From positions 124,001 through 188,000 of the IMG/VR virus record IMGVR_UViG_3300023184_000026: DNA of 64,000 nt; one strand, written 5' to 3'. This document shows positions 62,396-64,000 of the stretch, piece by piece. How positions within the stretch are numbered: position 1 is the first letter of the stretch; every line of letters begins with the position of its first letter. Made by a program: the position numbers and the translations under genes. The notes below the pieces were generated by a model. That model was given only the letters and a program-made list of their open reading frames with translations. It did not search any database and had not been told where the DNA came from.

Positions 62396-62794
62396 ATGCT
62401 AAACGTAGTAACAATGGTAGGTAATGTGGTGGCTGATCCATCCAACAGAAGCACAGGAACAGGTAAAAGTGTCAGTACACTTCGCCTTGCGGTTAATAAC
62501 CCACTCAATGATAAAGAAGTACTATTTATCAATGTAGATACATGGGAAAAACAAGCTGAATTCGTTAGTAAGTTTGTGAAGAAAGGCAGCATGGTAAGTG
62601 TTGTTGGACGACTCAAACAAGATGATTGGGAGAAAGATGGTGTTAAGCGTACATCATATGCCATTGTGGCTGAACGAGTCAACTTCATTGGCGGCAAAAA
62701 GAAAGATGATGCTGTTAAAGTTGCTGTTGTAAGTGATCAAAGTGAAGATTTTGATGATGCTGCATTTGCATCTGCGGCTGGTATAAAGAGTTGA
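62396..62794 (+). CDS. ssb: bacterial-type single-stranded DNA-binding protein
   Basis: GNVVADP, LRLAVN, FINVDTW..QAE, KKGS.V.V.GRL, acidic tail. Confidence 0.92.
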   Translation: MLNVVTMVGNVVADPSNRSTGTGKSVSTLRLAVNNPLNDKEVLFINVDTWEKQAEFVSKFVKKGSMVSVVGRLKQDDWEKDGVKRTSYAIVAERVNFIGGKKKDDAVKVAVVSDQSEDFDDAAFASAAGIKS

Positions 62795-62809: not shown

Positions 62810-62836
62810 AAAACCCCGATTTTTTCGGGGTTTTTT
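62810..62836 (+). terminator. intrinsic terminator after ssb
   Basis: AAAACCCCGA-TTTTT-TCGGGGTTTTTT. Confidence 0.85.
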
Positions 62837-62842
62837 CTTTAT

Positions 62843-62978
62843 AGCTATATACAGTTTTATACAAGCTATATACAAAATATTATAGCTTATATACTTTTTG
62901 TTATACGCTATATACACTTTTATACAAGCTATATACTTTTTGTTATAGCGTATATACAAAACATTATAGCGTATATAC
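62843..62978 (+). repeat. seven phased copies of (A/C)GC(T/G)TATATAC-like units
   Basis: Starts at 62843, 62864, 62884, 62906, 62927, 62947, 62968. Confidence 0.8.
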
Positions 62979-63158
62979 AATATTATATAGCAAAAATTCG
63001 TTATATAATATGCACTATATAGAGAATATATGTTGTATCAAGAACAATATAGCATATATGGTTTTGTCAAAAAAACCTATATAACAGGGCACCAATTCAA
63101 TTATATATGAAATTTAAAAAATGTCAAACACATAAAAATTTATATCAAAAATTATTTG

Positions 63159-63369
63159 CTCGACTTTTTATAAAAAATAGTTTATAATAACGTATGGGGA
63201 GGAACCCAAAATTTTAAAAAAATTGGAATGAATATTCACGCAATTTGAGCAGCCTCCGGTCCCCCACCCATCGGCCACCCTTTCGGGACTCACCGTAGTT
63301 CGGCTTTTCGGAATCGCTCTCCTACTTCCACCGTGCTTTAATAATGACAGAAATTTATAAAAAGTCGAG
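63159..63369. other. 16-bp inverted repeat (convergent promoter-like elements) flanking a GC-rich non-coding island
   Basis: CTCGACTTTTTATAAA at 63159-63174 and its reverse complement at 63354-63369. Confidence 0.75.
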
Positions 63370-63457
63370 AACAATCAGCCATGTGTGTGCCAACCAACAT
63401 CACTTTTTTCAACGATTGTTCTCGCTTTTTCTATAAAAAGTAGTCAGTGTTGGCAGC

Positions 63458-64000
63458 ATGAATTCACGAGAAACCGCCATGCTGCACTTTGCGCAGGTCT
63501 ACACCGGACAGCCGTTCACTGGCACGCAGGTTGAACGTGAGCTTATCATGATGATGCTCACCAACAGCCAAGGCAGCGTTGGGCTTGAAGAGGCACTTTG
63601 TGGCATCTTGAACCTCCAGCAAACGGTATCAAAGCATGGGTTTGACGCCATTGACACCGCGACCAACGTGCGATATGAACTCAAGCCAACCATGCAGCAC
63701 AAGCCCACGGCACGCTACAATGACGTGACGCCAAAGAAGATTCATGAGATGAATCAATGTGAGAACATTGTGGTGTTTGAAGCTCATTGTGACGGAAGAA
63801 TGATTTTTCTTGCCAAAGTGAATGGAAAGCATGTTGCAACATTGCTGCAAGAAAAATTCATTGCTCGCCAGAAATCAATTGAAGCTAACAAAAACAAAGG
63901 CACTCGCCAAAGCCACGGCATTTATTTGAACGAGATTGTTGAACGATTTGGAAAAAATTCTGTTGATGTTGTTTACTATTTTCCAAATAACAAGTTTCAC
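63458..64000 (+). CDS. PD-(D/E)XK restriction-endonuclease-like protein (3'-truncated, absent from the ORF track)
   Basis: Hand translation: LEEAL...KHGFDAID...RYELK; promoter-like element at 63422. Confidence 0.6.
   Translation, partial: MNSRETAMLHFAQVYTGQPFTGTQVERELIMMMLTNSQGSVGLEEALCGILNLQQTVSKHGFDAIDTATNVRYELKPTMQHKPTARYNDVTPKKIHEMNQCENIVVFEAHCDGRMIFLAKVNGKHVATLLQEKFIARQKSIEANKNKGTRQSHGIYLNEIVERFGKNSVDVVYYFPNNKFH

Follow-up and report, generated by a model that had tools for sequence, protein, structure and literature searches.

A structured small RNA gene faced by an antisense promoter in a freshwater jumbo phage

The GC-rich island between two facing promoters in the genome of a freshwater jumbo phage is the gene for a small folded RNA, which is read from the minus strand, matches no catalogued RNA family, is faced by an antisense promoter, and is swapped like a cassette between near-identical phages. 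It is probably not a replication primer. The locus was singled out by a sequence-only reading, which described convergent promoters within a perfect 16-bp inverted repeat aimed at a strand-asymmetric GC-rich island. It proposed either a structured small RNA with an antisense partner or, as its preferred option, a G-rich transcript that forms a persistent R-loop and primes replication as at T4 origins. The features that it described were confirmed, except that the right promoter is only a partial mirror of the left one. Its interpretation is partly supported, as our data support the structured RNA with an antisense partner but do not support the R-loop primer.

The analyzed stretch of 64,000 nt (hereafter "the window") corresponds to bases 124001-188000 of a 297,258-bp virus record (IMGVR_UViG_3300023184_000026), which is rated complete by CheckV and has 37% GC. 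Nearly all its genes are on the + strand. The window holds a Dda-like helicase, another helicase, a DNA ligase, a methyltransferase, and tail-like proteins. The island is located just right of an ssb gene (62396-62794, + strand; Pfam SSB, E 4.8e-24). Between them are the hairpin terminator of ssb (62810-62834), which is flanked by A-runs and T-runs so that it can act in both directions, and a block of iteron-like 21-bp phased repeats (62832-62999; about 8 units by eye, with five 63-nt copies aligned at 21/42-bp spacing). The repeats are context and not part of the RNA gene. Of the relatives, L011 has a different short repeat at this place and L012 has none (here and below, L numbers denote loci from related phages and metagenome contigs). 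Relatives instead repeat a motif of the form TCAACGA[CG]TTACAAAAG, both there and upstream of the RNA promoters.

The arms of the inverted repeat (63159-63174 and 63354-63369) are 16 nt long and 100% complementary. The left arm starts a + strand promoter (TCGACT, 17 bp, TATAAT; 63160-63188) with a predicted start at about 63194-63196. The right arm covers the -35 of the minus-strand promoter (TCGACT, 63368-63363) and the first 9 bp of its 16-bp spacer, but the -10 is CATTAT (63346-63341) and not TATAAT. The island has 53-65% GC compared to 13-25% in the flanks, with a GC skew of -0.25 to -0.39 on the + strand, and the CCC-GAAA-GGG hairpin is found on the minus strand at 63278-63287. No + strand ORF of 25 aa or more crosses the island. 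The only minus-strand ORF (63168-63374, 68 aa) starts upstream of the RNA's own promoter, and its frame is broken in relatives by length changes of 1, 2, and 4 nt. The frames opened by the leader that follows the + promoter differ between L018 and L020. A coding function was thus rejected.

A scan of the whole genome revealed that the 16-mer is the core of an early-promoter family, CT[TCG]GACTTTTTATAAA, followed by six or seven bases and a -10 such as CATAGT. There are about 30 copies, most of them on the + strand in front of the small genes at 188-209 kb. An ATG often follows within a few bases, so the leaders may be very short or absent. With one mismatch allowed, the window holds 4 copies (32212, 50503, 63159, 63369) against 0.00 expected from shuffles. 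The apparent palindrome is simply two family members which face each other. A third, degenerate copy (63419-63446, + strand) precedes the next ORF, which codes for a 197-aa protein (p197; 63458-64000 in the window, ending at genome base 188051). A perfect sigma-70 consensus promoter (TTGACA, 16 bp, TATAAT; 63127-63100, minus strand; 12 of 12 matches) stands back-to-back with the left promoter and points at the phased repeats and the ssb terminator. It is kept in L008 and L010 as TTGACT, 16 bp, TATACT, and could supply a transcript across the repeats independently of the small RNA.

The island is conserved on its own. SSB relatives in IMG/VR gave nine loci. In L011 (SSB 90% identical) and L012 (SSB 69% identical), only the island aligns with the window, at 87% and 80% identity, respectively, while the flanks do not align. 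In these relatives, the hairpin reads CCC-GCGA-GGG and CCC-GAGA-GGG on the minus strand, and a -10 hexamer stays at the same distance from the conserved start CACGGTGGAAGTAGGA. A pattern taken from the + strand -10 box and the conserved leader of the relatives found 7 viral and 49 metagenome contigs. Runs from 17 studies, labelled lake water, freshwater, or unspecified metagenome, hold parts of the stretch. In species-representative bacterial genomes, the leader pattern gave only two chance matches and no element. A blastn search against a phage collection found nothing.

The core of the RNA spans 63244-63339 on the minus strand (all coordinates are + strand positions, and the RNA runs from high to low). 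It consists of helix P0 (63333-63330 with 63304-63301), a predicted loop-E (bulged-G) module with AGUA (63326-63323) opposite GAA (63309-63307), helix P1 (63322-63320 with 63312-63310), helix P2a (63295-63293 with 63274-63272), helix P2b (63287-63285 with 63280-63278, capped by GAAA at 63284-63281), and a G-rich stretch (63271-63258). A structure with P0, P1, a two-pair outer helix, P2a, and P2b was tested on a plain MAFFT alignment of 21 type-A copies (alignment A2; sequence types A to D are described below). On A2, 94.9% of the cells are paired, five pairs show changes on both sides, none of 500 shuffles reaches the covariation score, and pairing drops to 19-54% when the partners are slid. 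A covariance model built from A2 (R1) scores 114.3 bits in the window and finds 61 matches in 45 sources (phage and lake-metagenome contigs), of which 58 are distinct. Unrelated control loci which share the 16-nt start score at most 11.7 bits, and a second GC-rich island at genome positions 210,135-210,330, outside the window, with long G and C homopolymer runs and hairpin potential, gives only a weak, chance-level hit of 11.8 bits. On all copies (alignment A3), 93.6% of the cells are paired and 14 of 15 pairs show double changes, for example, CG 35, AU 17, UA 3, GC 2 for one pair of P0 and AU 40, GC 16 for P1, and none of 500 shuffles matches any of the five measures. A3 was fitted to the model, so its pair counts lean towards the structure, but the independent alignment A2 gives the same picture with fewer double changes. 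Single-sequence fold energies are not better than those of shuffles (z about -0.1 to -0.7) and are thus not informative. A possible third hairpin P3 (GUAGG with CCUAC) can pair but scores no better than shuffles.

The strand is fixed by the pairing statistics. The pairs contain 98 G.U cells compared to 3 A.C cells, and pairing falls from 93.6% to 81.1% when the sequences are read on the + strand. The P2b loops GAAA, GCGA, GAGA, and GUAA, to which type D adds GCAA, are of the GNRA type only on the minus strand. The RNA is therefore the minus-strand transcript. The AGUA sequence between P0 and P1 is found in 52 of 58 copies and the opposing GAA in 55 of 58, so the module is nearly invariant while the neighboring helices covary.

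The RNA has its own promoter (63368-63341 in the window), and its predicted 5' end is at about 63334. In 52 of 56 copies with enough upstream sequence, a -10 hexamer with A at position 2 and T at position 6 ends one or two bases before the model start. It is TG-extended in 42 of them, as in TGCTAGAAT, TGCTACAAT, and TGGTAGACT. Fifteen use the phage's own early-promoter type, as the window does.

Many relatives carry a second copy about 0.8 kb away, with its own extended -10 promoter. In most of them, it is followed by an A-rich linker, a hairpin of the form UUGAGA...UCUCAA, and a U-rich tail, after which come an early-type promoter and the gene for a 176-aa protein (p176). This protein (L020:6443-6973, minus strand, with homologues in about 25 loci) is flanked by two paralogous copies of the RNA in many relatives. 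It has no Pfam family and no useful look-alike, and was only assigned to PHROG 30881 of unknown function. The genome of the window has one copy of the RNA and no p176. Seventeen of the 58 copies have no facing promoter or leader within 260 nt. The complementary figure of 41 of 58 copies with a facing promoter is biased, because most loci were fetched with a pattern taken from that promoter. The folded RNA is therefore the basic unit, and the convergent promoter is a feature of the copy next to ssb. In the window, no terminator follows the small RNA.

The facing + promoter is present in all six ssb-linked loci which carry the element. It is near consensus in relatives (TTGACT, 17 bp, TGnTATACT) and is followed in most of them by the leader GAGTCAGGGGNAGTC and an A/T run. 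This leader occurs once per genome, or in tandem: in L032, L045, L058, L063, and L057 the + promoter with its leader is duplicated about 80 nt apart, and the first unit is followed by a small hairpin and a U/A-rich run, as if the leader alone were a tiny RNA of about 45 nt. The window carries a different cassette of roughly 40 nt here (63178-63218, holding the + strand -10 box and the G-rich leader), while the remainder matches locus L047 almost base for base. In the minus-strand RNA, 63194-63207 of this cassette is the C-rich 3' partner of the G-rich stretch 63258-63271. The minimum-energy fold of 63189-63335 reproduces P0, P1, and P2 and adds this long 3' helix of about 13 bp. Pairing of the standard leader with the island as a conserved helix was rejected, as the variable positions show no correlation and type D cannot pair. 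A palindrome, TGAATATTCA (63229-63238), lies between the leader and the RNA core. It is kept in close relatives and also inside the long inserts of L066 and L071, and may be a protein-binding site. To the right, 63359-63430 (+ strand) folds into a long hairpin of 17 pairs in two stacked segments (-22.7 kcal/mol, z-score -5.49, 0 of 200 shuffles as stable) which ends in a U-run. This sequence is kept in the close relatives and is a likely terminator, which would result in a + strand antisense RNA of about 240 nt.

Assembled contigs from two metatranscriptomes, which originate from two studies, cover 63085-63446 but not the repeat region 62813-63040, whereas the DNA runs cover everything. A 186-nt contig from the freshwater run matches 63217-63370 exactly and begins with a relative's leader directly after the + strand -10 box. 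A 245-nt contig from the estuary run covers 63085-63329 with 19 differences (92% identity) and ends about 5 nt from the predicted start of the small RNA. This fits transcription of the locus, but the contigs show neither strand nor true ends, and DNA carry-over cannot be excluded.

The loci L047 (type A), L046 (type D), L026 (type B), and L059 (type C) share about 115-130 nt of left flank at 97-100% identity, and the first three also share the right flank. Yet the 5' ~80 nt of the RNA are unrelated in sequence. Types A and C, as well as the hybrid forms, keep the same plan: a GGR...YCC hairpin followed by CGAA, a second hairpin, and then RGGGGACC-NNN-GSCU. Types B and D keep parts of that plan. 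The gene order is constant, with ssb (SSB 57-100% identical), the element, then p176 or p197 or nothing, and then an SNF2-like helicase (56-96% identical). In every locus that reaches that far, ssb lies beside the element. The p197 ORF has no Pfam or PHROG match, has a higher GC content (44% overall, up to 57% locally) than the genome, and is present only in some close relatives. Others have the unrelated p176 on the other strand, or nothing, at this position, which looks like a variable accessory slot.

We consider it more likely than not that the island is a stand-alone gene for a structured small RNA, transcribed by the host sigma-70 RNA polymerase from its own promoter and starting at about 63334. 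Its first ~95 nt fold into an irregular helix (P0, loop-E module, P1), a two-part hairpin (P2a/P2b) capped by a GNRA loop, and a conserved purine-rich stretch. In the copy next to ssb, a strong early promoter faces the gene from about 140 bp downstream, and its transcript of roughly 240 nt would be fully complementary to the small RNA and end at the hairpin with a U-run. The fold, the strand, the promoters, the conservation, the paralogues, and the cassette exchange are established by our analysis. In contrast, it is an inference that the two units form a cis-antisense pair in which head-on transcription and duplex formation set the level, or the 3' end, of the small RNA early in infection. 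It is likewise inferred that the RNA acts in trans, as a folded molecule which binds a protein or small ligand, and not through an RNA-DNA hybrid.

The origin primer or R-loop reading appears unlikely but is not excluded. In this view, the G-rich minus-strand transcript would stay hybridized to the C-rich template, or run into the AT-rich stretch and the phased repeats, and would prime or activate replication, with the + RNA as a negative regulator as RNA I is for RNA II in ColE1. It is in favor of this reading that the element always lies in the replication module, between ssb and a helicase, that it points in the window at a stretch of 13-25% GC and at 21-bp repeats, that the RNA is G-rich and has an antisense partner, and that cassette-like versions in near-identical phages recall incompatibility determinants. 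However, 17 of 58 copies lie away from ssb and the repeats and have no facing promoter, and most of these lie about 0.8 kb away behind a protein gene and are followed by a terminator-like hairpin. Moreover, type D versions lack the G-run altogether, the repeats are not conserved, a separate consensus promoter already fires into the repeats, and the selection that we see acts on RNA helices, GNRA loops, and loop E, and not only on G-richness. Cumulative GC skew rises steadily along all 297 kb, with no turn at 187 kb, although this is a weak test because skew here follows the uniform gene direction. A G-quadruplex was rejected as a conserved feature, since by inspection the window copy has only three runs of three or more G and type D versions lack them.

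It is also doubtful that the + strand transcript is the functional product, either as the long leader of the rightward early genes or as a small RNA defined by the conserved G-rich leader, with an incidental minus-strand promoter. The + promoter is indeed the stronger one and belongs to the family that drives the + strand genes just downstream, the leader GAGTCAGGGGNAGTC is highly conserved, and one RNA contig begins right after the + strand -10 box. Yet the pairing statistics favor the minus strand, the minus promoter is conserved at a fixed distance in copies that were not selected for it, 17 copies lack the + promoter entirely, in many relatives the genes to the right are on the other strand, and in the window the + RNA meets a terminator-like hairpin before the next gene. 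A ligand-sensing aptamer related to the glutamine-I (glnA) riboswitch class, used as a free-standing sensor or as a termination riboswitch in the copies preceding the p176 gene, is a possibility that we regard as improbable. The second copies do show the order promoter, folded RNA, hairpin with U-tail, and gene, but an early-type promoter sits between the hairpin and p176, and the window copy has no gene downstream on its strand. Least likely is that the island is a functionless GC-rich remnant of acquired DNA caught between two copies of a repeated promoter. The neighboring p197 ORF is also richer in GC than the genome and present only in some relatives, and single-sequence fold energies are unremarkable, but this reading is contradicted by the conservation across phages whose SSB is down to 57% and whose helicase is down to 56% identical, by the compensatory changes that maintain the helices, and by paralogous copies with their own promoters.

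A more speculative reading, which we consider unlikely but which the data do not rule out, is that these RNAs form a new class of exchangeable, loop-E-containing phage small RNAs which serve as specificity determinants in a conflict. They could be decoys or sensors directed at a host defence or at competing phages, the variable 5' domain would be the part under diversifying selection, and the antisense promoter would be a built-in switch. This would fit the four unrelated versions between identical flanks in near-identical phages, the two paralogues in many phages, the variable neighboring gene slot, and a fold that is kept while the sequence is replaced. Few structured non-coding RNAs of phages have been characterized, and hardly any from jumbo phages. 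The RNA described here is widespread in lakes, strongly supported by covariation, absent from Rfam, and swapped as a cassette between otherwise identical genomes, and it uses the same E-loop as a known metabolite aptamer in a different architecture. This combination makes it a tractable entry point to RNA-based regulation or conflict in uncultured freshwater phages, and a test case for how head-on promoters shape a small RNA. For annotation, it shows that the convergent promoters are two members of the early-promoter family and not a special palindrome.

Literature searches by topic and by sequence words found no description of this RNA. Scans against Rfam 15 of the window, of 12 relatives' loci (at E up to 1), and of two short stretches found no family at the gathering score, with only chance-level hits besides one weak match discussed below, and ARAGORN found no tRNA or tmRNA. 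The loop-E module, AGUA opposite GAA flanked by Watson-Crick helices, resembles the sarcin-ricin/loop E module of rRNAs, which has been used as a modelling template for the glutamine aptamer (PMC5393176). This is a structural module and not a family, and its presence says that the RNA is built to fold and to be recognized, but not by what. Mimicry of 5S rRNA or of the sarcin-ricin loop was considered but is unsupported by any model hit, and we do not claim it. With the ColE1-type RNA II primer and its antisense RNA I, and with the T4 oriF/oriG R-loop origins, the locus shares a structured, G-rich transcript beside replication genes which is overlapped by an antisense RNA, and sequence versions that differ between otherwise similar replicons. 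In contrast to these, the antisense RNA starts beyond the 3' side of the core and covers all of it, not the 5' end alone, paralogous copies are followed by terminator-like hairpins and lie away from any repeats, and no origin signature was found. With the phage cis-antisense RNAs lambda oop, P22 sar, and P1/P7 c4 (the latter is listed in PMC2864571), it shares a small phage RNA which has its own promoter and is overlapped by a convergent transcription unit, and in P1 and P7 sequence variants of the RNA define specificity between close relatives. Those RNAs oppose or target protein-coding messages, whereas here neither strand codes. There is no sequence or model similarity (Rfam holds c4, but it was not hit), and the phage is a lytic-type jumbo phage.

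The nearest catalogued RNA is the glutamine-I riboswitch aptamer (glnA RNA, RF01739), which is similarly small (60-90 nt). A type C copy scores 13.0 bits against the gathering cut-off of 35, and there is no hit on the window copy. The shared part is the E-loop, GGAAGUA opposite GAAG, which is set between a closing helix and a distal hairpin; the crystallized aptamer has GAAGUAA opposite UGAAGC between its closing helix and P3 (PMC5393176). glnA-like RNAs occur in aquatic phages away from nitrogen genes (PMC9004378) and often in tandem (PMC2864571). A distant relationship or a sensing role cannot be excluded. However, the RNA is not a member of this class. The 5' strand of P0 abuts GGAAGUA directly in all type A and type C copies, so there is no P2 hairpin between the closing helix and the E-loop and hence no three-way junction. 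The closing helix covaries freely (CGGU/GCCG, UAGUC/GACUA) and does not keep the nucleotides which form the glutamine pocket (PMC6698751). A second GNRA-capped hairpin and a purine-rich 3' stretch are added, and the RNA is encoded by a stand-alone gene with its own promoter rather than being a 5' leader.
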